64,000 nt of DNA from Setoptus koraiensis (Eukaryota > Animalia > Arthropoda). The notes beneath the pieces are model-generated. The model had not been told where the DNA came from. It ran no database searches and saw nothing but the letters and a program-made list of their open reading frames with translations. Where the stretch lies: positions 3,782,001 through 3,846,000 of the forward strand of contig CM106586.1 in the NCBI GenBank assembly GCA_048013815.1, given 5' to 3'. Numbering within the stretch: position 1 is the stretch's first letter; every line of letters starts with the position of its first letter. The position numbers and the translations under genes were made by a program. This document shows, piece by piece, positions 2,016-44,298 of the stretch.

Positions 2016-3364
2016 ATGAAAATGGTGTTGACGGCTAGACAGCAGGAGGAACTCAATCACGCCATTGTCGAATATCTGTCCGCAAATGGATTCGATAAGA
2101 CCTGTCAATTGTTCCGTGATGAAGCCAACTTGCCAAATGAGATAGATAGTAAATTTACAGGACTACTAGAGAAAAAATGGACATCAGTCATTCGTCTACA
2201 GAAAAAAGTTATGGATCTTGAATCTAAGTTGTCCGAAGCTGAGAAAGAATTCATTGGTGGCGCACCTACTAGAGATAAACGATCACCAGTTGAGTGGATA
2301 CCCAGGCCCCCTGAACGATTTTCATTGAGAGGTCATCGTGATCCAGTTACTAGAGTAATATTTCATCCCGTTTTCAGTTTAGTTTGCTCATCTAGCGAAG
2401 ATGCCACTATTAAAATTTGGGACTATGAAACTGGTGATCACGAGAAAACATTAAAAGGTCATACAGACTCCGTGCAAGATATTGCATTCGATCCAAGTGG
2501 CAAATATCTTGCATCCTGTTCTGCTGATCTGACTGTAAAATTATGGGACTTTCAAAGCTATGAATGCGTCAGGACTATGCATGGCCATGATCATAATGTA
2601 TCATCAGTCACATTCATGCCAAGCGGTGATCATCTACTATCTTGTTCTAGAGATTGCTCACTCAAAGTATGGGAAGTGAGCTCTGGATTTTGTAAAAAAA
2701 CTTTTGTAGGTCACAATGATTGGATCAAAATGGTCCGCGTCAGCAAAGATGGTTCATTACTGGCAACATGCTCCAAAGATCATGTAAGTAACTCTCTTTT
2801 GTATCTCTGAAGGTACCAATTTATTCTTTGTTTAACATCGACCACTATTATGCTCTATTACACATTTACCGTATGCAGACAATAATTATATGGAATGCAA
2901 ATCAGAACGATTTACCCTCCTGCAACTCAAATCAAATTAAATGTACACTGAAAGATCACGATCACACAGTAGAATGTATCGCATGGGCCCCAGAGAGTGC
3001 CTTCAGCAACATCCTAGAGGCTGCTGGACCAAATTACAAAAGAGACCGTACAGGACCTTACTTGATAAGTGGATCGAGGGATAAGACAATCAAAGTTTGG
3101 GACGTTAGTGTTGGTGCTTGTTTATTCACACTCATAGGCCATGATAACTGGGTGAGAGGTGTATGCTGGCATCCTGGTGGAAAGTACATTATCAGCGTAT
3201 CAGACGACAAGACACTCAGAGTTTGGGACATAGTCAATAAGAGATGCTTCAAGACATTAGAAGCACATTCACACTTTTGTACATCCATTGACTTTCATTC
3301 CAAATCGCCTTTCGTTGCTACAGGTTCTGTGGACCAGTCCGTAAAAATATGGGAGTGCCGTTAG
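2016..3364 (+). CDS. LIS1: Lissencephaly-1 (LIS1/PAFAH1B1), LisH + coiled coil + WD40; exons 2016-2783 and 2879-3364, 417 aa
   Basis: [19 protein letters not shown] Lis[28 protein letters not shown] and C-terminal KIWECR. GTAAGT donor at 2784 and TATGCAG acceptor ending 2878 (95-nt intron) join the two ORFs in frame as SKDH|TIIIW. Confidence 0.97.
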
Positions 3365-4125
3365 TAGAGATCAATTAAAAAGAAGTTATAGTATAAATTT
3401 CTATACATTTACATGTATATATATGTATATGTATACATATATATATAACCATTATATCTATAGTTACTCATTTGTCTACTGAGGCACCTCCATAATAGAA
3501 GAGGATATAGTAGATATAGATATATAGGATACTCTATAAATATGAGTAGAGTTAAAAAGTCCTAGAAGTCGTGATGTAATTTATTAATAATGCTACTTTC
3601 AGCTTAACGCTTCTATTAAACTCTAACCGTAATGCAAGATGTAATTTTTGCGGTGCGTTGATTTGTATCCATAGCATCAGATTATCATTACTAAGTGAAT
3701 GGGCAACAATTGGTTCGAGATAATGCTCCCAATTTCGAAGGAACGTGGTAGACAAGTAGTTTGGTTTTAGGCACCTGCCAAGCAGCATTTTATTGGTCAT
3801 AATGTTTACACATTTAGTTGTCACGTCCACGTTAGCAAAAGTCTCAGGCTGAAAGTGATGAAGCCCAAGGTGAGTTTTGGTAACGTGCGTACATGAGAGA
3901 GGAATCAGCTTGCTGAAAACGGTGTCTCTCGGAGGTACAGATACCAATAACATATTGGCTGACATTCTATGAATACAAGAATGTAGACAGTTGAGATTGT
4001 AGTCGTCCGTGGCTTGGCCTAAAGGTTTTTGTTGTTTTGTATAAATCTTGAACATCGCGATATATAAATAATTTGTCCACAACTTTTTGTGATGAGAGCA
4101 AACGATATTCAAGAGGAGAGGAAGC

Positions 4126-25903: not shown

Positions 25904-28036
25904 CTACAGCAACAGCGCCGGATAATCCTTTCCCACCTCTAGCTTTCTGCCATCCATGCCTTTCGGAATGACTAATAAACAGTCGCAGCCTCTCAAACTT
26001 GACAGACGACTACTCTGCTGGTTAATAGATACTGAGATCAAGTATTTTGATGTTTTAGAGTTGAAACAGACTATAACTGCTCGTATAAACTCCATGCGGT
26101 TTTCTAGACAATACTCTTTATCTTTCTCTTCTATGGAGACCAACTCCGCTTTTACCAAATCTAATATCTTTGTCCAATCACCAAGAGAAGCAGGTTCACG
26201 CAAGTTTGCTTCCATAGGATTCAGTTTGATACTTTGGCGCAAGAATGGCATGATCAGAACGAGTGAAGTCACGAATGTCGACACTGGATTTCCTGGTAGA
26301 CAAAAGATGAACTTTTCTTGGCCTTTGAAGAGGCATGTTGCGAAACCAACTGGTTTACCAGGTTTGATATTGACGCGACCAAAATGAATTTTTCCTTTCA
26401 AATCATCCTCAATGATCTCTTTAACATAATCTTTAGTCCCCATGGATGCTCCACCTGAGATAATCAGGATGTCTGTTCTGCTTAAGGCCTGACTCATTTT
26501 CGTGAGCAACTGATCACAATCATCTTTGACGATGCCACAATTGCTTACGCTGAAGCCTTTTTTCGTGAAGAAAGTCGTTAGAAGAGGACCATTCGTGTCG
26601 ATTACACTCTGATCATGAATGTATGACCATTTGAATGGTTCGACCACTTCATCACCAGTAGACAGTATAGATATAGTCGGTTTTTTGACAATCTTTACTT
26701 GATTAACGCCCATCGAGCATAATAGACTTAATTCTACAGGCCCAATCAAAGTTCCTGCACTCATGCAAAAATCTGATGGTAAGTCACTACCTATTTCCCT
26801 GGTATACATATTTTTTTTAATTTCATAGATGGGCACTTTGTTATCAGTTATAGGCCCGGTTTTCTCTATTGGCACTACCGCACAATCCTTCGGCGGTATT
26901 CTACTTCCTGTGTTGACGGGATAACAAAAGAATGTATTCGATTCCTCGATCTTTTGCTTGGCCGAGAAACTTTCAAGATCCGGTAGTAGAAGTGCTTCTA
27001 TGAAAACAAAACTGAACTCTTCAGGTAAATCAGGCGGCATATTGACCAGAAATCCATCCATTGTGGATACTCTATGAGATGGTATGATACGTCTGGTGGT
27101 AACTGACTCAGCCAAAGTTTCTCCGATGACTTTCTGAGCTGACTCATAATCTCCGATGGTATATGTAACAAAGTCACTATATAGACGCGTAGATTGCCGA
27201 CGCAATTCTGAAATCGCATCATAATATTCAACTAGAGGGTACTTGGATTCTCTTGGGCGAACACTCTTGACAGATGGAACGCAACTTTTTAGGCCTCTGT
27301 CTAATATTGGAATGGTATCGTTGAGATTCAGTTCAGTGTTCTTTGAAACTCCGTAGTCTTCCGACTCATTTTCCTCGACAGACATTTCTTGATCATCATT
27401 CGTATTGATAGTGTTGTTGTTCATGTTCACAGTTCTGGAAGAAATGGCTGTTTCCATTTTCGACAGGTTGTCAGAATTCGAAACATTCATTATCTGGTTT
27501 TTTATTTGAGCAGTATGAAAGGCATCTATCGATGCACGATCGTAATTTATCTGGTGTATGCTATGAAAGAGCAAAGGTTCTAGGCAGGCCCAACAATCTT
27601 CGCAAGCCTTTCGCTTCCCAGGAAAATTGACTATGAGAGTATTTTTTCTTATTCCAGCAGTCAACCTGGATAGGGCAGCGAATCGTGTTATATTTAGCGA
27701 GTGTAATGACAAAGCAGCCGTTATGCCAGTACAGTGCTTTTGAATGACGTCATGAGTGGCCTCTGGGGTGACATCATTAGGACACAATCCGGTACCCCCG
27801 ATAGTTATTATGAGTGCCGAATTAGGTTTATCACTGAGCTTAACCAGCCAATCTACAATTGTTTGTCTATCATCCTGAATTATCACTTTCGTAACTGGAT
27901 TGAATCCGAGTTGTGTCATCTTCGCTTCAATCACGGCTCCACTCTCATCAGTGGCGATACCGCTAAAGCATCTATCACTGGTAACCAAGACCGAAGAGGA
28001 ATAGGGACTGAAGTCTTTCGATGACATGATTGACAT
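25904..28036 (-). CDS. GPHN: Gephyrin/cinnamon (MogA G domain + linker + MoeA E domain), intronless, about 710 aa
   Basis: ITIGGTGLCPNDVTPEAT, LSRLTAGIRKNTLIVNFPG, STMDGF, ILSTGDEVV, DTNGPLL, ISGGASMGTKDYVK, GRVNIKPGKP and LPGNPVS. The track start at 28048 is TTG and the first ATG is 28036. Confidence 0.95.
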   Translation of the reverse strand: MSIMSSKDFSPYSSSVLVTSDRCFSGIATDESGAVIEAKMTQLGFNPVTKVIIQDDRQTIVDWLVKLSDKPNSALIITIGGTGLCPNDVTPEATHDVIQKHCTGITAALSLHSLNITRFAALSRLTAGIRKNTLIVNFPGKRKACEDCWACLEPLLFHSIHQINYDRASIDAFHTAQIKNQIMNVSNSDNLSKMETAISSRTVNMNNNTINTNDDQEMSVEENESEDYGVSKNTELNLNDTIPILDRGLKSCVPSVKSVRPRESKYPLVEYYDAISELRRQSTRLYSDFVTYTIGDYESAQKVIGETLAESVTTRRIIPSHRVSTMDGFLVNMPPDLPEEFSFVFIEALLLPDLESFSAKQKIEESNTFFCYPVNTGSRIPPKDCAVVPIEKTGPITDNKVPIYEIKKNMYTREIGSDLPSDFCMSAGTLIGPVELSLLCSMGVNQVKIVKKPTISILSTGDEVVEPFKWSYIHDQSVIDTNGPLLTTFFTKKGFSVSNCGIVKDDCDQLLTKMSQALSRTDILIISGGASMGTKDYVKEIIEDDLKGKIHFGRVNIKPGKPVGFATCLFKGQEKFIFCLPGNPVSTFVTSLVLIMPFLRQSIKLNPMEANLREPASLGDWTKILDLVKAELVSIEEKDKEYCLENRMEFIRAVIVCFNSKTSKYLISVSINQQSSRLSSLRGCDCLLVIPKGMDGRKLEVGKDYPALLL

Positions 28037-28635
28037 TAGTAGTTGCAAATCCTAGAATAGTAATGAATGTGAGTGATGAGTAATGATAAAGTAATGATAT
28101 GTGGAGTGCTTTGTCAGTAAATAAAAATGCAAGTCTATTGTGCTTTTGTTGGAGCCACAGTTTTTCTTATCAGATACAGGGCCTAAACTTTCTCGGGTCT
28201 AACTTTTTTCAGTTACGTTGTCTAGTGCCTCAACGTGGTGGGGCGTAGCAATTGAGGCACGAGCGGTTACGATGGTTCGCTGGGATGCATCAGTTTGCGG
28301 ATATTACAATACCCGACATGATCGCGGGCCAGTAGTCACGCCCTGCGCAAGGTGCGCTTTTGCCCGTAACATCGAGTCGAGCACAGATGTAAACAAAAAT
28401 CGGCATGTTACTTATGCGCGTAGCGAAATCCACAAAAAAAAGACTCCTTTGAAAAAATTCCCAATTCAGTACCCAGTTTGCTTTGTTAGTATTTTAGGCG
28501 GGTATTGAATATGACGAAATCTTTCATGCATGTTTGCAATCGACGCTATGACGGCATTGTTATCGAGACCGCGTCAGAAAAAACATAGGGAACCCATGTC
28601 GAAGACACCATACGACGAATCTGGTTTCTATCTCT

Positions 28636-29943
28636 ATGATGGCTAACAAGTGGACAGCAAAACCAGCCAGCAATAAACTACCATACGCCCCTTTGATCAG
28701 ACACTCTTACCTGAACTTTAATCGTCGAAGTTATGGACAGCATCACTTGCAAAGATGTTTCGACTATCTCAGTATTTTGTCTGAAGACAAAATGCTCAAT
28801 CCATACATAACATTTAGATGTGCCTTCCTCATGATTGAAGCATGTGACAAGCGGATGATTAGACCTGCCCTCATTTCCAACTTGGAAACCATAACAAGAC
28901 ATCTGGACCTGCATAAGCCTGACATTTTTCTAGAGTGCCTTTCCTATCTCATACGCAACAAACAGATTGACTTTGCCAAACAATTTTTCAGTGATAGATC
29001 CAGATATATAAGATTGGTTCATCATTTTAAAGTCCCCATCATTGAGCTCACTATAGACTGTTATGAGTCCTATCTTTCCTATTTAACGTGGCTAGAATTC
29101 ATGGAAAAGGATCCAAACGATTCAAGACTGCAAGTCGCCTTTGAAAGCCAAGTAGCCAACTTTGGAGCAATTTTTGAAAGATCAAACTTCAACCATGAAT
29201 ATTTTCTGAAATGTTTCCTCCGGATGCTGTATCAGAATAACTGTTACAAAATGGCCGAAAAGTCTGTGCTGGATTTTGTGGCCAATAACAAATTTAATTT
29301 ATCGGGATATCTCACGCTCTATCGACACTTGCTTATGTGTAAATCGACCGTCACAACAGAAGAAGAGTCATCGCCGGAAGAAGAGAAACCACCATCCAGG
29401 GAAGTAGAGTTATCATTGGAGGACGAAGAATTATCATTCGAAGGGCCGCCACTAGGCGGACCATTAGAAGAGGAAACACAAATGGATGTGGAAGATACGC
29501 CCGAATGTGATAGTAAACCTGATCTCCCACAGATAGTTATCAATGAACGCTCAGCCAAAGATAATTTCGATACCATCTGGAGTGGACTGAGAAAATTAGA
29601 TCCAGCAAATGAGCTCCTACTAGAACTAATGACAGATGCCAATGCGAGTCTCGACGTCATTACTAAAATCACTTGCTTGATGGATATGTTGGAGTACAGA
29701 CAAAACTTCGGCAATCTCTTAGCATGGAGAACTCTTATCAACGAGCAAGAAAATCTCATGGAGAATCATCAAGAACTTCGAACTTGTGCCTCAAATCTTT
29801 GGTTGAAGAAGTATTCGACTGTATGGTCTCAGGTTAACTTTTTGAAGCATGTAGACCTCGATTCAAACGCGACGAATCAGTTAGCGGAACTTATTACTCG
29901 TGCGATGGATTTGTGGACTAATCAAATCTTGATCAGAACATGA
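28636..29943 (+). CDS. Probable TAF1A-like (RNA polymerase I SL1 subunit TAFI48), with an acidic insertion
   Basis: Helical-repeat protein. Segments such as AEKSVLDFVANNKFNLSGYLTLYRHL, LRKLDPANELLLE and LMDMLEYRQNFGNLLAWRTL resemble recalled TAF1A C-terminal blocks. Needs an HMM check. Confidence 0.55.
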   Translation: MMANKWTAKPASNKLPYAPLIRHSYLNFNRRSYGQHHLQRCFDYLSILSEDKMLNPYITFRCAFLMIEACDKRMIRPALISNLETITRHLDLHKPDIFLECLSYLIRNKQIDFAKQFFSDRSRYIRLVHHFKVPIIELTIDCYESYLSYLTWLEFMEKDPNDSRLQVAFESQVANFGAIFERSNFNHEYFLKCFLRMLYQNNCYKMAEKSVLDFVANNKFNLSGYLTLYRHLLMCKSTVTTEEESSPEEEKPPSREVELSLEDEELSFEGPPLGGPLEEETQMDVEDTPECDSKPDLPQIVINERSAKDNFDTIWSGLRKLDPANELLLELMTDANASLDVITKITCLMDMLEYRQNFGNLLAWRTLINEQENLMENHQELRTCASNLWLKKYSTVWSQVNFLKHVDLDSNATNQLAELITRAMDLWTNQILIRT

Positions 29944-29977
29944 TACTGACTGTATAGTAGGTAGTTCGAAGATATAA

Positions 29978-30550
29978 TTAGCGCTTAGGCTGCTTTATTT
30001 TTCTAAATTGTTCCGGAGCATTCAAGTTTTCTCCTTCGTAGAATGTTCTTAATAAATTGACTGCTTCATCACATCTCACTCCATGGATGTATTGCAATTC
30101 AGGCTCACTTTTGATCAAAGATTTATCGGTAACTCTGAGGACGGACCTACATCCCCCAAATCTATCATTTGAGCATCCATAAATGACTCGATTGACCCTG
30201 AGGTGTCTCAAAATTCTGGCGCATTGTATACAAGGTTCACAAGAGACGTACACATCCATGTCGGTCCATTTGATTTTTTCGGAAGAGCCTCCAGTGACAT
30301 TGTTGTTTATGATATCATCTATGCAATTCATTTCGGCGTGTCTTGTGGCGTTTTTCGTCTCGTTCACTCTATTTCTATTGGTAGCCAAGATACGATCGGT
30401 GGTACTATCAACGAATACACAGCCAATAGCAACCTCTCCGTTATCCAGAGCTTCTTTGGACATTTTTAGGCTCAGGTCAAAATAAGCCATATTGAAAGAC
30501 ACGGATTGAGAAATATCTGGCTTCGGTTCGGTTTCTTGTGTTCGATTCAT
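29978..30550 (-). CDS. ADAT2: tRNA-specific adenosine-34 deaminase ADAT2, intronless
   Basis: GEVAIGCVFV, NRVNETKNATRHAEM, VYVSCEPCIQCA and YGCSNDRFGGCRSV. Confidence 0.95.
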   Translation of the reverse strand: MNRTQETEPKPDISQSVSFNMAYFDLSLKMSKEALDNGEVAIGCVFVDSTTDRILATNRNRVNETKNATRHAEMNCIDDIINNNVTGGSSEKIKWTDMDVYVSCEPCIQCARILRHLRVNRVIYGCSNDRFGGCRSVLRVTDKSLIKSEPELQYIHGVRCDEAVNLLRTFYEGENLNAPEQFRKIKQPKR

Positions 30551-30983
30551 AATTGGAGCTATGAGGACTATTTCTAATACTATACAGACATGACAATAAC
30601 ATTCTGCTTATTTCTACAACAGATGGAGGGAGCAAATATTCGGACAGTGAACTTGCGAACATGTGATCTGCATAGCATGTTTTTCTCAATTATCTGGGCA
30701 ATGCGTGCGTTCTTATGGGTAGACGAAGGCATTTGGGTATAAAGGTGTGTCGAATGTTACATATTCAGATTGAATGGGTCCATAATTAGGATATTCTTTA
30801 GATTACAACCATCATGTTGCCCATTTATGCCCCATGTGTGTCAAGCGACCTCTAGTTTTGTATGACAAATATCATTCGTGGTACTAGAGGTGAAATCTGG
30901 ATTGAGGTTTCACGTAAATTGTTCTTCGAGGATGCCCAATTATAGTTATATTTAGATATTCATTGTCCCAAGAAAATCCCCTC

Positions 30984-33032
30984 ATGGCTTTGCTGAATCC
31001 ACACATTACTACAATAGATCTGGGTCTTACCTGTATTCTTCTTGGTATAGGAGCTTGGTATCTTTTGAGGAGTAGGAGGAACGATGCCAAGCCTGGTGTA
31101 GGTATGGGTTTAGATGACAATATGCAGATAGACGAAGGGGAGAAAACCAGCTTGTATGACAGGATGATATCAACCGATCGTACTATAATAGTTTTTTATG
31201 GCTCACAGACAGGAACTGCGGAGGGATTTGCAAATAGACTAACCAAAGATGCGGCCAGATATGGGATGAATGCATTAATAGTCGATGCTGAGAATGCCAA
31301 CTTTAACGATCTCACACTCATTAGCACTATCTCAAATTCATTAGCAGTGTTTTGTCTGGCTACATTCGGTGAAGGAGATTTCACTGACAATGCCAAGGAA
31401 CTACACAAATGGCTCAAGGCTGGAGAAGCTGATCTAAATAAGCTTAACTTTGCGGTGTTTGGCCTGGGAAACAAAACATACGAACATTTCAATGCTGTTG
31501 GTATTTACGCCAATGACAGACTAGCAGAAATGAATGGAAACCGTATTTGTGAGCTGGGTCTGGGTGATGACGACGGAAATATCGAGGACGATTTTATCAC
31601 ATGGAAAGACAAATTCTGGCTTGAAGTCTGTGACAAATTCAAACTTCATGAGGCAAAGAATTTAGTCAACTTCCGTCAATATCAACTGATAGTACATGAA
31701 AACAGGGACGATTTTTACGTAGATGGGAAGTCTGTTGGTCTGTTTACTGGAGAGCCTCATCGCATTGGCTCGTATGAGTCACCGAAGCCACCTCATGGAC
31801 TGAAAAATCCCATACTCTGCCAGCCAATCAATTGTCGTCAGTTATACAAGGGCAAAAGATCATGCATGCATATTGAATTTGATCTCAAACAAAAGCTTGT
31901 GGCCTATGATACTGGTGACCATTTGGTAGTGTTTCCTGAGAATGATCCAGATTTAGTGAACAAACTAGGAGAATTGTTGAATATTGATTTGGACGAGATT
32001 ATTTCAATGAAATGCCTTGATGTGCTGACAGCTAAGAAATACATAATACCATGTCCTTGCACTTTCCGAACTGCTTTCACTTATTACGTGGACATAGCAA
32101 GCCCACCAAGGATGCATACATTGAGAGATTTGTCTAGTTTTGCTCAAGATGAAGAACACAAGAAGTTTATGGAGCTGATTAGTTCATCAAGTGAGAAAGG
32201 AAAAGCTGAATACGCCAAATGGATCTTGAGCGATTGCAGGAATATTGTGCACGTGCTCACTGATTTACCCTCATTCAAGCCTCCTGCAGATCTACTAATT
32301 GAATTGTTGCCACGTCTTCAACCTCGTTACTATTCTGTTTCATCTTCTAGTTCTGCAAATCCTAGCGTAGTTTCAATTACGGCAGTGGTTGTAGAATATG
32401 AAACTCCGGCAGGCCATGTCAACAAAGGTGTTGCAACAAACTTCTTGCAAAGAAAGACTGGTCTATTGAACAAGAATGGCTACAAGGCATCCCCTGTACC
32501 TTTGTGCTTTGTAAAATCAAACTTCAGACTGCCCTCCAAAGTGAAACTATCTCAGGATAATGCAATGCCACCAATTATTATGATTGGTCCTGGCACTGGT
32601 TTAGCTCCGTTTCGTGGTTTCCTACAAGAGATAGAGCATCTGAAGAGGAGTGAAAATTTATCTACATCAGATGTGGTATTGTATTATGGTTGTAGGCACA
32701 AAAATGAAGACTATCTATATGAAGATGAACTCATGAGATGGAAAGAGAACGGTACCCTGACACAACTCAATGTCGCATTTTCACGGGATCAACCGGAAAA
32801 GATCTATGTGACACATTTACTTGAAAAGAATAGAGAGGCCACTTGGGATATAATTGGAAAGCGGAACGGTTGTGTGTATGTTTGTGGTGAAGCTCGATCG
32901 ATGGCCAAGAACGTTCACCAAATTTTCAAGAATATCGTAATGGAGCAGGGACAACTCGAAGAAAAGGCTGCAGATGCTTTCCTCAAAGAGATGGACAGTA
33001 CAAGAAGATATCAGGCAGATGTGTGGTCTTAA
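30984..33032 (+). CDS. POR: NADPH-cytochrome P450 reductase copy A, intronless CDS, 682 aa from first ATG
   Basis: N-terminal TM, FYGSQTGTAE, FGLGNKTYEHFN, RYYSVSSS, MIGPGTGLAPFRGF, YYGCR, AFSRDQPEKIYVTHLL, YVCGEARSMAK and C-terminal DVWS. The track start at 30963 is TTG. Confidence 0.97.
   Translation: MALLNPHITTIDLGLTCILLGIGAWYLLRSRRNDAKPGVGMGLDDNMQIDEGEKTSLYDRMISTDRTIIVFYGSQTGTAEGFANRLTKDAARYGMNALIVDAENANFNDLTLISTISNSLAVFCLATFGEGDFTDNAKELHKWLKAGEADLNKLNFAVFGLGNKTYEHFNAVGIYANDRLAEMNGNRICELGLGDDDGNIEDDFITWKDKFWLEVCDKFKLHEAKNLVNFRQYQLIVHENRDDFYVDGKSVGLFTGEPHRIGSYESPKPPHGLKNPILCQPINCRQLYKGKRSCMHIEFDLKQKLVAYDTGDHLVVFPENDPDLVNKLGELLNIDLDEIISMKCLDVLTAKKYIIPCPCTFRTAFTYYVDIASPPRMHTLRDLSSFAQDEEHKKFMELISSSSEKGKAEYAKWILSDCRNIVHVLTDLPSFKPPADLLIELLPRLQPRYYSVSSSSSANPSVVSITAVVVEYETPAGHVNKGVATNFLQRKTGLLNKNGYKASPVPLCFVKSNFRLPSKVKLSQDNAMPPIIMIGPGTGLAPFRGFLQEIEHLKRSENLSTSDVVLYYGCRHKNEDYLYEDELMRWKENGTLTQLNVAFSRDQPEKIYVTHLLEKNREATWDIIGKRNGCVYVCGEARSMAKNVHQIFKNIVMEQGQLEEKAADAFLKEMDSTRRYQADVWS
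31408..32994 (+). repeat. 1587-bp near-identical direct repeat, copy 1 (partner 38897-40483, offset 7489)
   Basis: By eye I found only 5 substitutions between the two segments. The flanks diverge abruptly. Confidence 0.93.
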
Positions 33033-36000
33033 GGCCTTGTTTCGCTTTGATGTGCCCTATATCACAGAAACACTAGTCGAATATTTGAATCTCATATGAT
33101 GTCACTCACCACGATCCATCATATCAATCGTCGGGGATTACTGTTTTTTAAAGTTTACCAGCTTAGTCGAGTTGCTCCATGTAATAAAATATATCATCTA
33201 CATGATAGATTTCATGGTTCAATTCATTAAATGCCTTTCAGGTATCTAACCTAAAATAGATCAATAATTTTGCCTATCGACGAAGACGTTCTTCAGCTTC
33301 AATGAAAGTATAATCACAAACAGAAAATTGTGTTGATTTGAAATCAGGGATAGAGTTGTTATTCCATCAGTCTTGCGACTGATTGACTGAGACTGACAAG
33401 CCATTGAAATCTTAGGTCGCATCGTGCTTGTATTTACTCGGTCAGTGTTGCGTACCTACATATCAGGTGAAAATTCCATCGAAGTACATATCTGACAAAA
33501 TCCACCCTCAGAAGCGACTATAGTTACTTCATTTTGCAAACTGATCTTGCAAAATTAACCTCTATTCTATGATATCTCTCAGTAATTACACCCCTCCCCT
33601 TTGATGTCGGACGCGCAACTTCTGTCCAAGGTTAAAGAAAATTGTGACCGCGAAGAAATGAAAATCGTATCATCTTTTTCTGTTGCAACCTGAGAGATCT
33701 TTATGTCTCGACCCAACCACAAATCGAATATTAACTTTGACAAGTCCTCATCAGACGACCGATGATAGAGAGCTACCTAAATCAAGGGATTTGTTCGAGA
33801 GATTTCTTGTAAGTAATTCAGATTCCACTTGAATGAGCAGATGAACAATCAGAAACGATCCGTTCACTTTTACAACGTTTCATAGAATAGCTTCATTTTG
33901 CAAGTCTTTGTGTTCATTAGTTGATTGATAAAATTCCTATAATGTTCCAATCAAACTATCGAGTGAGATCATACTGGAGCCGTGATGTTCACATGTGGAG
34001 AGGAGACACTAGCTTCGCATTAGTCATTCTCAAGGCCTCCACAATTCAGTCATGAATAGTGGAAGTTGAATTCACTTCCAAATATTAGATCAGTGGTTTT
34101 TTTTGTCAGGCTTAGAAAAAAAAAAAATAAAACACTAACAAATGTGTGTCAATCTTTCAACTAAATTATTACCTATATTCTACCTACTGTATATTGTTTC
34201 GTTCTATATTCACAGCTACTCGCTAATATAGCTAACAATAAAAGACAGTTGAAGGAAGCTCACAAAACTTCACATAGTAAATAAATTGAAAGTAAGTAAA
34301 GTTACTTCTGACATAACTGCACACCAATACTATAGCATTCTTACCATCCATCCATCCAGTGAAATGAAATGTACCTTGTCAGTGGTGTCTACCAAAAATG
34401 CACTCCAACGTATATTATCTCTTTCATGCTCTCATCCATCTACTACCTGCCCGATAAGTTTAGCTAGAGAGCTTATGAGTTGGTTAATTAATAGTTTGGC
34501 ACCCATCTGACGAGTGAAAGCCACATGATTCATGTAAGCTTGCATTATCATCGCTAGTGCATGCTGTCAGTTTTGGTTGTTTTCTCCACTAAACAACTAT
34601 CACGATAACCATTGACGGATAATCTCTGCAAATGGTGACGCACGTTTGACAATGTTAGACAATGAGAATTACGTTCTCCAGCTATTCTCATGAAATTAGT
34701 CGTGACAAATGAATAAGTATACAGTAGTTATCAGGCATCTTACATCCATTCATTCATCTTATATAATAGGTTGTGATAGGATGATTCACGAAGAGTCATT
34801 TGCACGATCAATTCAAGTTTCACAAAATTTCTGCAACATTGTCGTCACTTAGAGATCTTACACAAAACAAAGTGATACTTCACTCGTTATTACATAGTCA
34901 TCTCCTTAGTCTTATTAGGATTTCATTCTAGTATAAGTAGGCAGTCGGGTATTGAGTGGTAGGTTGTGGAGTAGCCAGCAACAAGTTTGTTCTAAGTTTA
35001 AATCAGGTTCAAGGCTAAAACTACTGTTCCCGTTAGTCGAATCTTTAAAGTAGGCTAAAAGTCGAAAATGTTTTGTCGCTGTTGCTGATGTTTGCATTGC
35101 AATAGAGTTCATTGAGCATATCCGTTTTTTGTTTTGTTTTCTTCTTGTCACTACGACAATATTCAGGTTTAAGTGTTAGTCAGTGTTGTACAACAAGTGT
35201 TGTTGTGAGTCATTTATGTGTCATGAACAAACACTTAAGAACATAGTTGTAGTTGGTTATCTGTGAAATGTAAGTTGAAATAAAACAACGTTATCGTTAT
35301 TATAATGTCTTGTGAGTAGCAATCACACAATTCTAAGCTGTTAGACTGATCAAGATCGCATGCTTTCAGAGTTGTTCGGACAAACACAATGTCTTTTGTC
35401 GTTCCAATGTTAAAAACAATCGCCTGTTGTCCAGCAATTGTGTTGCAAATCCATTTGTTTGTCTTGAATGTTGTCAGATTGGCAGGCAGGCAATCGGGCA
35501 GGCAGACATACAGGCTACGCAGTTGCGGTCAAATCGACTTAAACAACATTCTTAGGCGGCCCCCACTTTCTTTTTTTCCTCATCAAAACTGACACTAATT
35601 GTTTGATGAGGGATTTGCTGGAGGTGGCAAATGGAAATTCTACGCTGTGCCATTGGGCTGTTGATTAGCTAAATGATGATGTTCGCACAAAAGTGAAATT
35701 TTCCCAGATTGTAAGATGTACATGTGGACAGTATTTGGACCTTCACACAAAACTATACAACAGGTGAACGGCTCGTTGGTTACGAGTATAACTTAGAAAC
35801 GCGTGGCTTATTTTGTTTTAGCTCTTTCGCATTCATTTTTTCTTTCTTTCTTTTTCTCCCCCGCAATCTCATTCTATTTATCTGCCTTCCAATAAGACTG
35901 GTTGGGAATTTGGAGAAATTGGAGCTTTTGGTTGGACTCTAGATCTAGGGATCGTGTAAGACCTGTAACAGGATGTAATTGAGCAACAACAACAACTTTT

Positions 36001-36898
36001 ATTGAATGTGAGCAATAATACTAACCGATTTATAACAAATATAGTGGATGTTTGTGTTTGTTGTACTAACAACGTACTTAATATGAAAATGAATTTTTAT
36101 CATACTGATGAAAAAGAAAGCAAACTGTTAGTAAGGAGCAACTTTCCCTTCAAACAATAGTTGAGACAGTGAACAATAATCGGCATTCAATTGATGGGAG
36201 GCGTCTACATGCATTGATGGGTGTGCTCAAAGAACGGTTAGTTAGTTTGTAGCTAGATAAGCTTGTTAAGTTGAAAGTATTTGCCTATACATTTTCTTGA
36301 TTCGATTCATATTCGTTGATGCTTGATTGTTGGAAGCAGCCAGCCGGGCGACCAGCTAGCAGCTTGATAATCGTCACTTAATTTGCAAGGTTTGTTCATT
36401 CACCATGCCTCACCAGTTTGAGCAAAAGTACAAGAAATTCATTAAACTATCCATAGCAAGCCTAGAGGTGAGACAGACTCAAAATCTCGCTGCTACAGTA
36501 TGTATTATGAATCGCTCTCATATAAATTAGAACTCAACCGAGTACTGCAAACAGGTAAAAGCTAATGCTACAAAAAAGAGAGATCTTGTCATGTTTACCT
36601 GTGCGCTGAACTAAACTTCAAAATCGGAAATAGTAGTTTGCAAAAATAGTTGGAAAGGTAGCTCGCTAAAACTCTGAGCCGTGAATTGACTAATTTGGCT
36701 CAAACAACTCACTAGTTGTATTGCTAATAGTGGTAGTATATGATAGTATCGCGTGTATTTAGCGCCTAACTTCGCTTACCACTAATAAACTACGGGGATC
36801 ATTTACGAATAGCAACCAACCTAAGAGAGAAAGCAGGCGCCGAAATTTTATCGCTATATCTTCCATCTACTCTACTTACTATCTTTGCATAGACATCT

Positions 36899-36926
36899 CG
36901 ACGACGACGACGACGACGACGACGAC
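36899..36926. repeat. (CGA)n trinucleotide microsatellite, about 9 units
   Basis: Direct inspection of the sequence. Confidence 0.9.
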
Positions 36927-38235
36927 AGATATCCATGTGAAGTAGTGGGCATCATAATAAACGTCATCACTATCATATAGTTTTAGTTGTACTTAGTTGA
37001 AAGAGCAGCCACATGAATTGTGGAACTAGCATTCCACAATTCACTTGTTAGTTCACCACAGTTTCTTTTCGAAGATTACATCATCACATTGAAACACACA
37101 AATAGACAGACAAACAAACGCTCACACTGGTTCACATAAAGTCGGACTACAATTTTATAATAATCTATTTATCTCAACGTGTATATAATGTACATGTAGC
37201 AATATTGATTGATGTACTAGAAACACACCAACAATTGTTATCATTATTGTTGCAAAATTGTTGTTGTTATTGACAAAACAACATCATGACCAGTGTGTGA
37301 TAGTGGTGATTTAATTAAATGATCAGTCAATAGTATCTTCTATCTGATACCTGATATTCAACAATTATATACTTCGCTGTCGACACAACAACATCAGAAT
37401 GCCAGTAAGTCACCGTGTCAGTGAAAGTCTATCAACCTCTGTGCTATAATAGTAGCTATATATAAGAAATTACCTAGTTGTTAGCTCATATCAGTTACCA
37501 AAGCAAATAAACTTTGATCAACTGTTTCTACGAAACGAGAAGAAATAAACAAAAGACAAGGATAAATATAAAATAAACCTTGAAACAGCCAAAGAATTCA
37601 ATTGAAACAACAACAGAACAACAACACTTTCTGACTTCTTCTTATTGTAAACATTGTGTCACAATGCGTGTGTGTGTATGCGGGTTTGGTGCCGATCAAC
37701 AAGTCAATTAGCAAGCAGCTCAAGATAAGGCTCGCATCTTTACTTCAATTTATTTTTATTTTACCTGTACACATTGTATTCACTCAAGACGCTGAGTCAT
37801 ACCGTCTAGATAAACTATCAGTACTTATCGGGAAATGATTCATTTTAACTACATTTACTCATATGTGAATAGTGTAATCAGCAACAGATGATATCAATTA
37901 TAACATTTAGCACACACAAAATCAGTCATGGCCACATGAAAAGCACATTGGAAACAATTTGAGAAAACACACAACAAGCCCGAGTCTCTATCTTTATTTC
38001 GTTATTATTCAAGTCCGACAAAACTATCGGTGGAACCAATAAATCAATCGGATTTCAACGAATACCACAATTCATTATAGCGCCTCATTAATCCTACATT
38101 AGATGAAGTAGATACGCGCATTCTCTTTAGACGACGCCACCTGATAACCGCTTTCCAGAATTCTGCAAATCTTATCAAATAGCATATCTGAAATTTTTTG
38201 GACTCAAGCCTAATAATCCACCTAATACTAGCACC

Positions 38236-40521
38236 ATGGATTTGGCAATAAATTCTATTCTCAGTACACATATTAGCCCAACGGATGTGGCATTAACATG
38301 TATACTGCTCGGCATTGGAGCCTGGTACCTGATAAGCAAGAGGAATACAGCGGAGCAGGACGTAGACTTGTATTTAAAAGAGTAGGTTTTGAGAGAGTAG
38401 TACCTTTGTTACTCATTTTAACATACACAAGACATTATACAGAGTTAGACTCGTGAATTGATTATACTTCCATCGCTATCTTTCCACTTCCATAGAGTTA
38501 CATATATAGATAGCCCCGATGAAACTGGTAGGGATAGCTTATACGAAAAGATGAAGTCCACAGTAAGTCGGAACTGCCCTCTAAGCAAACTAGCCCAAAA
38601 TACTTGCTACAAAAACCTTGTTCATTAATTGTGCTGCGGCCATTTACTACTCACTGTCACTTAGGATCGTACCATGGTTGTCTTCTATGGTTCTCAAACA
38701 GGAACAGCGGAAGAATTTGCTAACAGACTCACCAAGGATGCAGCGAGGTATGGAATGAAAGCGTTAGTCGCTGATCCTGAGGAGGTAAACTTCGACGACC
38801 TGACACACATATGTAACATCCCAAATTCACTAGCAGTATTCTGTCTAGCTACATACGGCGAAGGTGATCCAACTGACAATACCCAAGAATTCTATGAATG
38901 GCTCAAGGCTGGGGAAGCTGATCTAAATAAGCTTAACTTTGCGGTGTTTGGCCTGGGAAACAAAACATACGAACATTTCAATGCTGTTGGTATTTACGCC
39001 AATGACAGACTAGCAGAAATGAATGGAAACCGTATTTGTGAGCTGGGTCTGGGTGATGACGACGGAAATATTGAGGACGATTTTATCACATGGAAAGACA
39101 AATTCTGGCTTGAAGTCTGTGACAAATTCAAACTTCATGAGGCAAAGAATTTAGTCAACTTCCGTCAATATCAACTGATAGTACATGAAAACAGGGCCGA
39201 TTTTTACGTAGATGGGAAGTCTGTTGGTCTGTTTACTGGAGAGCCTCATCGCATTGGCTCGTATGAGTCACCGAAGCCACCTCATGGACTGAAAAATCCC
39301 ATACTCTGCCAGCCAATCAATTGTCGTCAGTTATACAAGGGCAAGAGATCATGCATGCATATTGAATTTGATCTCAAACAAAAGCTTGTGGCCTATGATA
39401 CTGGTGACCATTTGGTAGTGTTTCCTGAGAATGATCCAGATTTAGTGAACAAACTAGGAGAATTGTTGAATATTGATTTGGACGAGATTATTTCAATGAA
39501 ATGCCTTGATGTGCTGACAGCTAAGAAATACATAATACCATGTCCTTGTACTTTCCGAACTGCTTTCACTTATTACGTGGACATAGCAAGCCCACCAAGG
39601 ATGCATACATTGAGAGATTTGTCTAGTTTTGCTCAAGATGAAGAACACAAGAAGTTTATGGAGCTGATTAGTTCATCAAGTGAGAAAGGAAAAGCTGAAT
39701 ACGCCAAATGGATCTTGAGCGATTGCAGGAATATTGTGCACGTGCTCACTGATTTACCCTCATTCAAGCCTCCTGCAGATCTACTAATTGAATTGTTGCC
39801 ACGTCTTCAACCTCGTTACTATTCTGTTTCATCTTCTAGTTCTGCAAATCCTAGCGTAGTTTCAATTACGGCAGTGGTTGTAGAATATGAAACTCCGGCA
39901 GGCCATGTCAACAAAGGTGTTGCAACAAACTTCTTGCAAAGAAAGACTGGTCTATTGAACAAGAATGGCTACAAGGCATCCCCTGTACCTTTGTGCTTTG
40001 TAAAATCAAACTTCAGACTGCCCTCCAAAGTGAAACTATCTCAGGATAATGCAATGCCACCAATTATTATGATTGGTCCTGGCACTGGTTTAGCTCCGTT
40101 TCGTGGTTTCCTACAAGAGATAGAGCATCTGAAGAGGAGTGAAAATTTATCTACATCAGATGTGGTATTGTATTATGGTTGTAGGCACAAAAATGAAGAC
40201 TATCTATATGAAGATGAACTCATGAGATGGAAAGAGAACGGTACCCTGACACAACTCAATGTCGCATTTTCACGGGATCAACCGGAAAAGATCTATGTGA
40301 CACATTTACTTGAAAAGAATAGAGAGGCCACTTGGGATATAATTGGAAAGCGGAACGGTTGTGTGTATGTTTGTGGTGAAGCTCGATCGATGGCCAAGAA
40401 CGTTCACCAAATTTTCAAGAATATCGTAATGGAGCAGGGACAACTCGAAGAAAAGGCTGCAGATGCTTTCCTCAAAGAGATGGCGAACAGCCGAAGATAT
40501 CAAACCGACGTGTGGTCTTGA
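38236..40521 (+). CDS. POR: NADPH-cytochrome P450 reductase copy B; exons 38236-38381, 38496-38562 and 38665-40521, 689 aa
   Basis: Exon 1 MDLAINSILSTHISPTDVALTCILLGIGAWYL matches the copy A anchor. GT-AG introns at 38382-38495 and 38563-38664 keep frame and give ...SLYEKMKST|DRTMVVFYGSQTGTAEEF. Canonical TYGEGDPTDN is present. Confidence 0.95.
38897..40483 (+). repeat. 1587-bp near-identical direct repeat, copy 2
   Basis: Matches 31408-32994. Confidence 0.93.
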
Positions 40522-41339
40522 ATCGCTCGAGAGCATTTTATGATCGACAAATCCAACAGGGTAAAGTTTATTCACTGCTGTGATAGCACGCGTATTCTCT
40601 TTTGTACAGTATTCCATGTTTCAACTTATAGATATCAATGACATTTTAGTACAATATTAAATCCACCTCACAACAATTAGATCTCTGTTCTTTCCACGCT
40701 ATTTAATGACATACTCCACCACCTTAATGTTACTATGAGACTAGAATCGGAACTCATGTTTCACTTAAATTTCTACTAGTAGATCCGCCGGTGGTTTCTA
40801 AATTTCTCGCTATTGTTCCAAACCGGGGCTCTCATTTATTCGGATTATCTGGTTCGTGACATGACAGATCTTCTATCGATTCTTCGGGCATCAATAGAAG
40901 TTGATCCGTACCGCCTTCTTTGAGTAACTTTCACATATTTTTGGAGCCATTTTTATCTCGGCGGACAGCTCTCCCCAATTGTTAAATAGTTCAGCTCAAT
41001 TTTAATCATCAATCGAGCAGAGAGTGATTTCATTATCAAAATTAACAAAAAACAATGAGTCTATCGATTGATCGGACAAAGAAACACCCAGTGCTGGCTT
41101 GTTGTGTAAACAACTATTTCAATGACAGCGTGGTTGACAAAGATCAACAACCCAATGTTCATTTGATTGTAAAATGAAAACTACGCGGTGGCGCATGACT
41201 GAATCACCAATCGTAAATCACGATCAGTTTCTGGCTGAAAAATTTTAAGTCTGTCCGAACGAAAAAAAAACAGTCCAGATTCAACAATATAAAAGTTCGA
41301 GATTCCTTTACAGTTGCCATTCTAATTATCTTTTTAAAG

Positions 41340-42302
41340 ATGGATGAATCAACTATTAACCATATGCCAACAAGTAGTACATCTGACGAACGCTCAAAGT
41401 TGCTGAAAGGTGACCTTAAACGGAAACGAGACAATAATGAAAGATGCACTGAGATTCGTCATTGCTGCCTATTCATATTCATCATGATTACGATTCTGGG
41501 CGCCTTGATTGGTCTATTCTTTCTAGTTAAATTGACATTTGATGGATGGTCCGACGAATCGTGTCAATTGATACGTTATACGCATATGCACCATAGAAAT
41601 AAAAGCATAGTAAAGAATGAGTCAAACTTGAGCAAAACTCTCCTATCCATCAAGACGTCGATCGGTTTGGACAAGAAGAGCAAAGGTTCGGGCAATTGTT
41701 CTTGTAAAGACATTCATAACGAAGAAAAACCAATCAGACAGAAGGAATCAAATCAATCGCAACCGTATTCTTATATGCAGAATATGGTTAGCACAGACAA
41801 TTTGGTTAAGCTGGACTTCCGAGGCTATGTTATTATAGAGGATCTTACACACAAATATACGTTTGTATCGAATTTAGGCAGCAAAGCTATTCTAACTCAT
41901 ACTCTAGAGAGAAATGAACCTACCCTTGCGGTCGATTTCCATTGTGGTGAAATCGTTTTCCATATCAACACAGATCTGAATAATTCATCAAGAAAATATG
42001 CAACAATAATGATAACGGGTAAGACAAACAGTGGCATAATTTATGGACACAGAGAGTTCCTTGAATGGCGCACGCCGACACTCCCGAAGCCATTATTTCT
42101 CAATATCATAGATAAAGAACACTACTACTGTGACGAGGAGAGAAATTTGAAATTGTTGATACACAAAGAGACCAACTTCCAATTGACTCTGGTTCTACAG
42201 CACTTGGAACTGGAAATCTATCGTCCGTCTAAGCAGGACAGGGATAAATTTGCAACACCAAGAGGTAGGTGTACTGACTGTCATGATGACACAATGAAAT
42301 AA
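41340..42302 (+). CDS. Single-pass membrane protein, probably type II, with a LAMP-like luminal domain
   Basis: Cytosolic-type DERSKLL, a basic run, then a hydrophobic helix at about residues 42-64. C-terminal PTLAVDFHCGEIVF and HYYCDEERNLKL...LVLQHLELEIY...F...C..C resemble LAMP-domain spacing. There is no C-terminal TM. Confidence 0.5.
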   Translation: MDESTINHMPTSSTSDERSKLLKGDLKRKRDNNERCTEIRHCCLFIFIMITILGALIGLFFLVKLTFDGWSDESCQLIRYTHMHHRNKSIVKNESNLSKTLLSIKTSIGLDKKSKGSGNCSCKDIHNEEKPIRQKESNQSQPYSYMQNMVSTDNLVKLDFRGYVIIEDLTHKYTFVSNLGSKAILTHTLERNEPTLAVDFHCGEIVFHINTDLNNSSRKYATIMITGKTNSGIIYGHREFLEWRTPTLPKPLFLNIIDKEHYYCDEERNLKLLIHKETNFQLTLVLQHLELEIYRPSKQDRDKFATPRGRCTDCHDDTMK

Positions 42303-44298
42303 TACCTTGATTAATACCTTCAATATCTAGAAGCTGAATAATAATAATGATCTATTCGTCTCGCCAACCAGGTGTCAAATGTGATGATTCATTTGTCTAA
42401 TGATGGGAAATGGAGATATTTTTTTAACCACGCACAATAGAACATATAAATATATATTAGGAATAAATAAATCATTTTAGACTCACTAGAAAACACTTGT
42501 GAAACAGTCATTCAAGACAGTTCTCTTTCTTCTTCTATTGCTGAACTTCCCTTCTTAATGAATCATTTGAATACCGATATATTTAAAAATAATATTACCG
42601 ATTCTTTGTTGAACACCAGATCAGTCTAGGTAGCAAGTATCGCGTCTTCCGACTGGAGTTCTTGGTTACATTACACCTGTGTAGCCGAAGGCACGGTTAA
42701 GTCCCAGGAAGGCATGTGAAATTGTGTAAAAGCAATACAACTTTGGTCCCCAACAAGACTCGAAATCCTCGCCAAATTCTGAAAAAAACAGCTGATAAGG
42801 CGTGAGATGTTGAGAATGTTGTATTGTGCAATAGAATTAGCGAACCCTCGCGCCAATATTGTGTACTAGCAAACGAAAGCCACACTGGCTTACCACCTCT
42901 ATCTAGACAATGTGCATTTTTGTTTTTCTCCAACGACCCCTACCGAGCGCGACATCAACATGACTCATGATACATTTTTTCTAGAAATCACCCCCCATTA
43001 ACACTCGTTGCAAGAAAAAAAAAGTAAGTCGTTGCCTTTCACTAGAAGAATGCAAAATTATTAGTCGATCGACCGAGCAGCCTCAACCTCACTGTTGATA
43101 ATTTAGCATCAGATGAAAGATCGAGAATGTTGTTAGTGCAGCATTGTAAAACTTAGTTCAGAGAGACAACAGAATACTTAGTGTAAGAAAGGATCGAAGA
43201 CATTATTTTTCAGGGCCGAGTACATCACGACTTCGAGCATAGCTTACAGTTGCGCTATATTTTTCATGCATGTAGCTGGTGAATTGATATCATTTGAGTT
43301 GTTGGAAAAATCTTGTATAAATTGGATAAATAATTAGTTACTTTAGTTCCTATAACACACAAGATATAACGCAAAGAACAAGAAGTGGCAACATATTAAA
43401 GTATTATCGTGATACTTATTACACAAATTGCATATGTGCCATTTTTAATCTTACTATATCATTATATCTATCATTACTGCTACTATTATCGCTGCTATTA
43501 TTATTGGAAAAAAGGATAACTACAAAGAAAACAGTAGCGTTCATTAATGTAATAGACCTCTAAGCGATCAACGTTGATTTTTACTCCAACACATAGGCGG
43601 AATATCCTTGAAAAACAAATCATCACTAGGAGAGTTACTTAATTCTATTTATTTAAGTAAATGCTTGAAAATACCATAGTAATCAAATCGATATTCTCTG
43701 ATCGAGCGGTAAAAATCATTAACACCCATCGGTCACAGATTGTAACTCATTACGATCTGACCTTTGCAGGAAGCTTCGTGAAAGTGCTTTCTAACGAATA
43801 GCGAAAGCGGCGCAATCAATAATTGATCTCCAGAGGCTCACAAAATGAGCATTGCATTTGTTATTATAAGCATCAACTAAAAATTCAATTTCATCATTCT
43901 TATCTGAAGGAACGTATTCAAGCGCAGTCGACTTTCTATCGTGCATTCTATTATTGCGCCTACAACTGACACCCACACATTATTGCACTAAAACAATCTT
44001 TAGAGTGTAACTAAGACCTACACCGTTTATTGAAATAGCTGTATTTTTCAGATTATATCTCACTGAAGTTTATAATCAATAATAATGGTATCCATATTTT
44101 AATCTATTATTATTATCAGTTTAGAAATAATCTCGCCAGAATGACTTAGAATATTACATCTAACTAGCTTATTATTTCGAGAAAGATTTGATTGTATTGC
44201 ACAAAATATCGTATCTAAACTCTATAATACCCAGAATAGAGGGCATCAATGGTTGATAATTTTAAGAGTGCTAAGGACAATTAAGGAATTATATTAAT

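Follow-up and report, generated by a model that had tools for sequence, protein, structure and literature searches.

Does an animal that carries two genes for NADPH-cytochrome P450 reductase (CPR) also possess two different reductases? The question is raised by a 64,000-nucleotide stretch of Setoptus koraiensis DNA, hereafter the window (GenBank assembly GCA_048013815.1, contig CM106586.1, positions 3,782,001 to 3,846,000 of the forward strand), in which two CPR genes, copy A and copy B, lie in tandem and in the same orientation. Every microsomal P450 of animals depends on CPR as its sole obligatory electron donor. How a single reductase can serve dozens of different partners has been asked for many years, and has been studied mostly through point mutants and patient variants. 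We lean towards reading copy A as a real, intact, membrane-anchored CPR paralogue, kept by selection beside a housekeeping copy B, whose partner-docking or flavin mononucleotide (FMN) surface would have been re-tuned.

Copy A (30984-33032, plus strand) is an intronless, complete open reading frame of 682 amino acids plus stop, translated from 30984 to 33029, and is made up of a membrane anchor followed by flavodoxin (FMN), flavin adenine dinucleotide (FAD)-binding and NAD(P)-binding domains. Three Pfam families are matched above their cut-offs (PF00258, 3e-30; PF00667, 3e-62; PF00175, 3e-15), and over its full length the protein aligns with a chain of a solved NADPH-cytochrome P450 reductase (a diflavin reductase, EC 1.6.2.4), 9ef0_A (HMMER, E=5.5e-197). 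The closest named CPRs, those of mites, ticks, spiders and one scorpion, are about 50% identical to it, and the figure of about 50% also covers insect CPRs. A hydrophobic N-terminal anchor is required for CPR to couple with microsomal P450s. The predicted membrane anchor occupies residues ~10-28, IDLGLTCILLGIGAWYLL, and its 13-residue core, LTCILLGIGAWYL, is the same as that of copy B despite saturated synonymous divergence. RYYSVSS, GTGLAPFRGF, YVCGEARSMAKNV and DVWS are likewise identical in the two copies; all except the terminus lie in a tract homogenized by gene conversion, which is described below. We take RxYS, GTGxAP, the catalytic Cys in YVCG and the C-terminal D-x-W-S to be the FAD/NADPH catalytic motifs of CPR.

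What distinguishes copy A is the start of its FMN domain (31176-31407, plus strand), a segment of about 80 codons outside the conversion tract that is ~78% identical to copy B and holds the derived substitutions of copy A. From B to A, TAEEF has become TAEGF, DPEE has become DAEN, NFDD has become NFND, TYGEGDP has become TFGEGDF, QEFYEW has become KELHKW and GMKAL has become GMNAL. Rat residue numbers were taken from the HMMER alignment to 9ef0_A, and human numbers equal the rat numbers plus 3. On the rat scale the replacements are E93G (codon 31224-6), K108N, P114A (31287-9), E116N (31293-5), D/E120N (31305-7), Y140F (31365-7), P145F (31380-2), Q150K (31395-7), F152L, Y153H (31404-6) and E154K (31407-9), where each change given with a plus-strand codon is derived in copy A. 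The affected codons span 31224-31409. An earlier note on this DNA had placed the changes it listed at 31170-31410, and translation and alignment bear out every one of them there, with homology between the copies starting at 31176 and the near-identical tract at 31408. Its tally of four acidic residues lost, two Lys gained and one Lys lost is also correct, giving a net change of +5, and copy B is canonical as it had claimed, with all canonical motifs present.

How far copy A has departed from other reductases is seen against 120 other CPRs. E93, P114, Y140 and P145 occupy columns that are 100% invariant in that set, and all four are replaced in copy A. Position 116 is E or D in 119 of these proteins and position 120 is acidic in 112, while position 108 is always K or R and position 154 is never basic. 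Residues absent from all 120 number 13 in copy A versus 3 in copy B. The 80-residue segment has a net charge of -4 in A and -9 in B, where the others average -8 +/- 1.15 (range -11 to -5). For the whole FMN domain the values are -10 and -15, with the others at -15.4 +/- 1.6 (range -18 to -12). The FMN-side surface of copy A is less negative than that of any of the 120 compared reductases.

The segment nevertheless bears the marks of continuing constraint. Only 4 of 31 invariant columns are altered in copy A (27 kept), versus 17 of 49 variable columns (p=0.04). SQTGTAE, which forms the FMN phosphate loop, is unchanged, as are GEGD (G141, E142, G143 and D144), TDN and LGNKTYEHFN. Position 140 is still aromatic, with Phe for the invariant Tyr, and P145 has also become Phe; with an aromatic residue retained at 140, copy A likely binds FMN. 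The FMN domain of a CPR typically bears strongly acidic surface patches, in rat D113/E115/E116, E142/D144/D147, D207-D209 and E213-D215. E93, E116 and the acidic residues at 120 and 154 are lost, and the acidic residues D113, E115, E142, D144 and D147 are present. By alignment, Y178 and the clusters D207-D209 and E213-D215 map to the converted tract, with no difference between A and B. The earlier note had described the acidic docking face as remodelled. The loss of charge and the alteration of invariant sites stand, but the word is too strong for a protein that keeps D113, E115, E142, D144 and D147 and whose FMN domain still carries -10. Judged from its residues, the FMN-side surface of copy A appears partly de-acidified rather than rebuilt, with constraint clearly persisting.

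Outside the coding sequence the two genes have little in common. DNA similarity between them is limited to the coding region 31176-33030, and their flanks have no other homology. Within this region lies a tract of 1,587 bp (31408-32994 in copy A, plus strand), comprising the second half of the FMN domain and the connecting, FAD and NADPH domains, which is 99.7% identical between A and B. Five differences fall inside it, at 31424, 31583, 31708, 31856 and 32060, and its dS is 0.012; on either side identity is ~78% or less. The 12 codons and stop that follow in copy A (32995-33032, plus strand) are unconverted and retain the DVWS terminus.

A tract so sharply edged and so nearly identical resembles the output of collapse or polishing, and one might suspect a mis-assembled or over-polished duplicate, or alleles placed in tandem. 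We consider such an artefact extremely improbable. In contigs of two sequencing runs from two other studies (X2 and X3), A-type and B-type 5' flanks both enter one shared contig of 1,570 bp, from which 3' flanks of both types depart at 32994. Depth in X2 is 215 over the shared contig, about double the roughly equal 100-118 of the A and B flanks, and in X3 the shared contig is at ~4x flank depth. Sequence specific to copy A is present, with 0-1 differences, in four runs that include X2 and X3, and the lack of further homology between the flanks also speaks against the artefact. The two junction types and the approximately doubled depth establish the tract as real gene conversion and exclude polishing, collapse and an allelic artefact; assembly error and alleles are therefore ruled out by contigs from other studies' runs. 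The claim of the earlier note that A and B have a common FAD/NADPH module is upheld, the two being near-identical through a conversion tract that is seen in independent read sets.

Two details of these contigs deserve mention. In X3, the contig with the 3' flank of copy B, which joins at 32965-32994, has a depth of 123 versus 7-12 for the other flanks; the excess could be due to a repeat or to highly represented neighbouring sequence. In a further run, X7, from a third sample, a B-linked contig has the B alleles at 31583 and 32060, the A alleles at 31708 and 31856, and a private A>G at 31781. This mixture suggests continuing exchange between the copies, unless the contig mixes A and B. As for the 5' edge of the tract, it may reflect selection for the divergent segment of copy A, or too little homology for conversion to extend.

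The unconverted parts are much older than the tract. Over the 80 unconverted codons of the FMN domain, A and B differ at a proportion of synonymous sites (pS) of 0.68, with dS ~1.8, dN 0.136 and omega (dN/dS) 0.075 by the Nei-Gojobori method (NG86). For the anchor and linker (30984-31175 in copy A, plus strand, 64 codons), pairwise alignment by the same method gives a pS of 0.72 and a dN/dS of 0.146 over 63 aligned codons. Between the source species and its nearest relatives pS is 0.72-1.05; since the A/B value is close to these between-species values, the unconverted parts must have separated long ago. The last conversion is, on these estimates, more than a hundred-fold younger than that split. 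Both copies are under purifying selection outside the tract, with a branch omega of ~0.1 for copy A. Neutral sequence at such a synonymous distance is not expected to leave 145 codons open with fewer than one in five residues changed. The earlier note had set dN/dS near 1 beforehand as the value that would speak against its claim; the pairwise value is 0.075, with saturated dS, so that a ratio near 1 does not describe the long-term history. A neutral pseudogene is ruled out by omega of 0.075-0.146, by the saturated dS and by the open frame.

Copy A is nonetheless the fast copy. To assign polarity, A and B were aligned with 11 named arthropod CPRs and with 21 related sequences, 60-65% identical, drawn from public metagenomes and read assemblies. 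The segment has 21 A/B differences, of which copy A holds the derived state at 12 and copy B at 3, the other 6 being ambiguous. A relative-rate test gives a chi-square of 5.4 (p=0.02). In a maximum likelihood tree of the segment A and B are sisters (support 97/87), with branch lengths of 0.36 for A and 0.023 for B, and a three-point comparison of pN, the nonsynonymous proportion, assigns ~0.094 to the A branch and ~0.030 to the B branch. Assuming equal time and saturated dS, the upper bounds on omega are ~0.1 for A and ~0.03 for B. Outside the tract, copy A has evolved three to fifteen times faster than copy B. The sister grouping indicates that the duplication is specific to this lineage.

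The altered positions coincide in part with surfaces of known importance in other CPRs. Copy A is changed at the equivalents of human E96, P117, E119, Y143, P148, Q153, F155, Y156 and D157, and its changes fall in three FMN-surrounding loops and a helix, regions that the literature ties to P450 docking. In human CPR, D116, E118, E119, E145, D147 and D150 belong to acidic patches implicated in cytochrome P450 (CYP) binding (PMC7094780, PMC7555755, PMC13494183). The random mutants P117H and P117L/L125V show an isoform-dependent rise in CYP1A2 or CYP2A6 activity (PMC7094780; PMC7555755). In a docking study with CYP1A2, the FMN-domain contacts include E95, E118-E119, Y143-G144, D147, D150-N151 and Q153, and the same paper notes that the patient variant Q153R lowers CYP17A1 activity, while the activity of several other CYPs goes up (PMC13494183). 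Altered partner specificity or redox tuning of copy A, as the earlier note had proposed, would therefore be a reasonable inference from the changed positions.

How might such a protein work? The two genes are mosaics: recent gene conversion holds 1,587 bp near-identical, comprising the latter half of the FMN domain together with the entire FAD/NADPH module, and the 145 codons ahead of the tract, which encode the anchor, the linker and the first three FMN-surrounding loops, diverged long ago. We envisage that copy A would bind FMN and draw electrons from an FAD/NADPH engine identical to that of copy B, and that it would present acceptors with a surface of lower acidity and a 140s loop of different shape. 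The result could be a shifted preference of copy A among P450s or other acceptors, and possibly shifted FMN potentials or a shifted balance between open and closed forms as well.

Several observations weigh against a copy A that has been kept by selection for a re-tuned surface. Its derived changes are enriched only marginally at or adjoining published contacts (7/26 vs 5/54 elsewhere, p=0.044), and at the strict published contact set the enrichment is not significant (3/13 vs 9/67). The best-studied acidic residues are unchanged, so that any docking effect may be small. A non-synonymous variant occurs in run X3, from another sample labelled as the same organism: C>A at 31406 turns the derived His (rat 153) into Gln. 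A full-length search gave no A-type orthologue among 21 close relatives, and none came up among 58 matches to the N-terminal 157 amino acids of copy A, of which the best is 62% identical and canonical; cross-species conservation of copy A therefore cannot be shown. The stretch specific to copy A was not found in any run on record as RNA, the types of runs X7 and X8 being uncertain. X7, of unknown type, covers only coding sequence, with an A-specific contig (30965-31175) at a depth of 2.5 and B-linked contigs at 10-20. This ratio is unlike plain DNA; in RNA it would correspond to B being several-fold more abundant than A. X8, which is guessed to be RNA, contributes a single A-specific contig of 199 bp and nothing else. 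Transcription of copy A is weakly indicated by these contigs of uncertain library type, and we infer its expression to be low relative to that of B.

Much of this can also be explained if constraint on copy A, as a redundant duplicate, has relaxed. Mildly deleterious drift would then be tolerated while B does the work, and most of the gene would be mended again and again by conversion from B, which would make it look sounder than it is. We regard this as possible but doubtful. The replacement rate of A, 3-15x that of B, would follow equally from relaxation and is a further point against a selectively kept copy A. The alteration of residues invariant elsewhere is a usual sign of lost constraint, and the lack of significant enrichment at strict contacts, the apparent depth of A below that of B in the one RNA-like run, the missing orthologue and the variant in another sample all fit as well. 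Against relaxation, the 145 unconverted codons are saturated at synonymous sites and yet keep an open frame and a dN/dS of 0.075-0.146, where stops or frameshifts would be expected of neutral sequence. Invariant columns are depleted of changes, with those of the FMN phosphate loop and GEGD among the 27 kept, and the anchor core has stayed the same as in B. Redundant duplicates are not normally retained over so large a synonymous distance. It is also conceivable, although in our view unlikely, that the changes mainly re-tune the FMN cofactor or the equilibrium between closed and open domain arrangements, in which case A would differ in electron flux or leakiness and not in partner choice. Y140F and P145F, both at positions invariant in the 120 CPRs, belong to the 140s loop beside the isoalloxazine ring, and in the closed state the lost charges are turned towards the FAD domain. 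Human Y143 and Y181 are regarded as FMN-binding, and G144 interacts with FMN (PMC7094780). Moreover, with a downstream module the same as that of B, any kinetic difference must stem from the diverged segment. Pulling the other way, G141, E142, G143 and D144 are unchanged and four of the derived changes alter surface charge at a distance from the ring. Shen et al. 1989 reportedly found that the rat Y140F protein retains its FMN content and activity, which would fit kept cofactor binding in copy A and would count against a mainly cofactor-directed effect.

Returning to the reading of copy A as a selected paralogue with a re-tuned surface, it is tempting to go further. The locus could encode a true two-reductase microsomal system, in which one FAD/NADPH engine, homogenized by conversion, is mounted on two FMN 'adaptor' halves, with A selected for a subset of acceptors and the tract edge held in place by selection. 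We put this forward as a tentative proposal, for which candidate acceptors of copy A might be certain clan-3 P450s, heme oxygenase, squalene monooxygenase or cytochrome b5.

The structure of copy B bears on the origin of the pair. Spliced from three exons on the plus strand, it encodes a 689-amino-acid CPR and has two short GT-AG introns, both in the part for anchor and linker. Exon 1 (38236-38381) encodes the anchor and the start of the linker and is followed by a donor GT at 38382, in phase 2. Exon 2 (38496-38562) encodes linker ending in KMKST, after which comes a phase-0 intron at 38563-38664. Exon 3 (38665-40521) holds the canonical start of the FMN domain (TAEEF, DPEE, TYGEGDP), the B side of the conversion tract (38897-40483), the C-terminus and the stop. 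When the introns of copy B were aligned with those of the Tetranychus urticae CPR gene (3157-3245 and 3312-3642 of its sequence), the intron at 38563-38664 agreed exactly in position and in phase 0 (KST|GR vs KST|DR), and that at 38382-38495 agreed in phase and lay at nearly the same place. This match indicates that copy B keeps two ancestral introns, which were lost in A and in the single gene of relatives: contigs of three relatives hold one intronless CPR each, and no second copy or remnant was found within 6-10 kb of these genes. By this comparison, introns would have been lost at least twice, or else an older duplication was followed by loss. No common neighbours were found between this locus and the CPR loci of relatives by which the copy in the ancestral position might be recognized, and an exact look-up of the copy A protein gave no record.

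The window as a whole is AT-rich (~38-41% G+C) and dense with genes, most of them intronless. Although it is otherwise so gene-dense, the 5.2 kb between the two CPR genes (33033-38235) has no open frame longer than 78 codons, and an Rfam scan of 28000-43000 gave no match. Some 430 bp upstream of the start codon of copy A, on the minus strand, lies a 189-amino-acid cytidine/deoxycytidylate deaminase-like gene (29978-30550; PF00383, 1e-18), and the two may use a common short divergent promoter region. The open frames that flank the CPR pair, at 28636-29943 (plus strand, 435 amino acids) and 41340-42302 (plus strand, 320 amino acids), are without a Pfam match at E<=0.01.

Beyond this locus, the comparison matters for the question of how a reductase chooses its partners. 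A second reductase that is maintained in nature and departs from the first solely in the first three FMN-surrounding loops, at residues some of which vary nowhere else, would amount to a domain swap ready for study. If true, a two-reductase system would be the first described in an arthropod and a natural experiment on CPR-partner specificity. We found no paper on two CPRs in a mite or eriophyoid; some insect papers on 'two CPR genes' apparently concern, by their titles, cuticular proteins, and in the tomato russet mite genome paper a methods heading names diflavin reductases, on which the text and supplements are silent. There is also a bearing on pest biology, where P450-based detoxification and acaricide resistance depend on CPR. 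In one study a homologous CPR was reportedly required to validate spider-mite P450-based resistance in Drosophila (PMC7761253). Even if copy A is relaxed and half-impaired, the locus clearly illustrates how gene conversion can hide the decay of a duplicate.

Set beside the canonical animal CPR (rat and human; 9ef0, 1amo, 3qe2), both A and B have the same architecture from end to end, anchor through DVWS, and A differs in that E93, P114, Y140 and P145 are replaced and the FMN domain is five charges less acidic. Animals are generally described with one CPR form (PMC3578826), where here there are two, and the pair may be a rare animal case of two specialized reductases. Plants (class I/II), fungi, Dictyostelium and trypanosomes have more than one CPR per genome, thought to serve different P450 sets or conditions (PMC3578826, PMC8942828, PMC2257935). 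Those paralogues have diverged over their full length, whereas the mite copies differ in the first 145 codons and are homogenized over the rest. The pair also resembles the concerted evolution of tandem paralogues, in which there is likewise a sharp-edged tract (here of dS 0.012) between coding sequence of saturated dS. A parallel for the substitutions themselves is offered by human POR variants, both engineered (P117H, P117L/L125V, N151D, G144C) and from patients (Q153R, A115V). Copy A has Ala where human POR has P117 and Lys where it has Q153, and changes in copy A also adjoin the D116/E118/E119 and D147/D150 patches. Such changes in human CPR shift activity differently from one CYP to another (PMC7094780, PMC7555755, PMC13494183). 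The human variants, however, are individual mutations, made in the laboratory or found in disease, of a gene present in one copy, whereas copy A brings together about 12 derived changes in a natural second gene.

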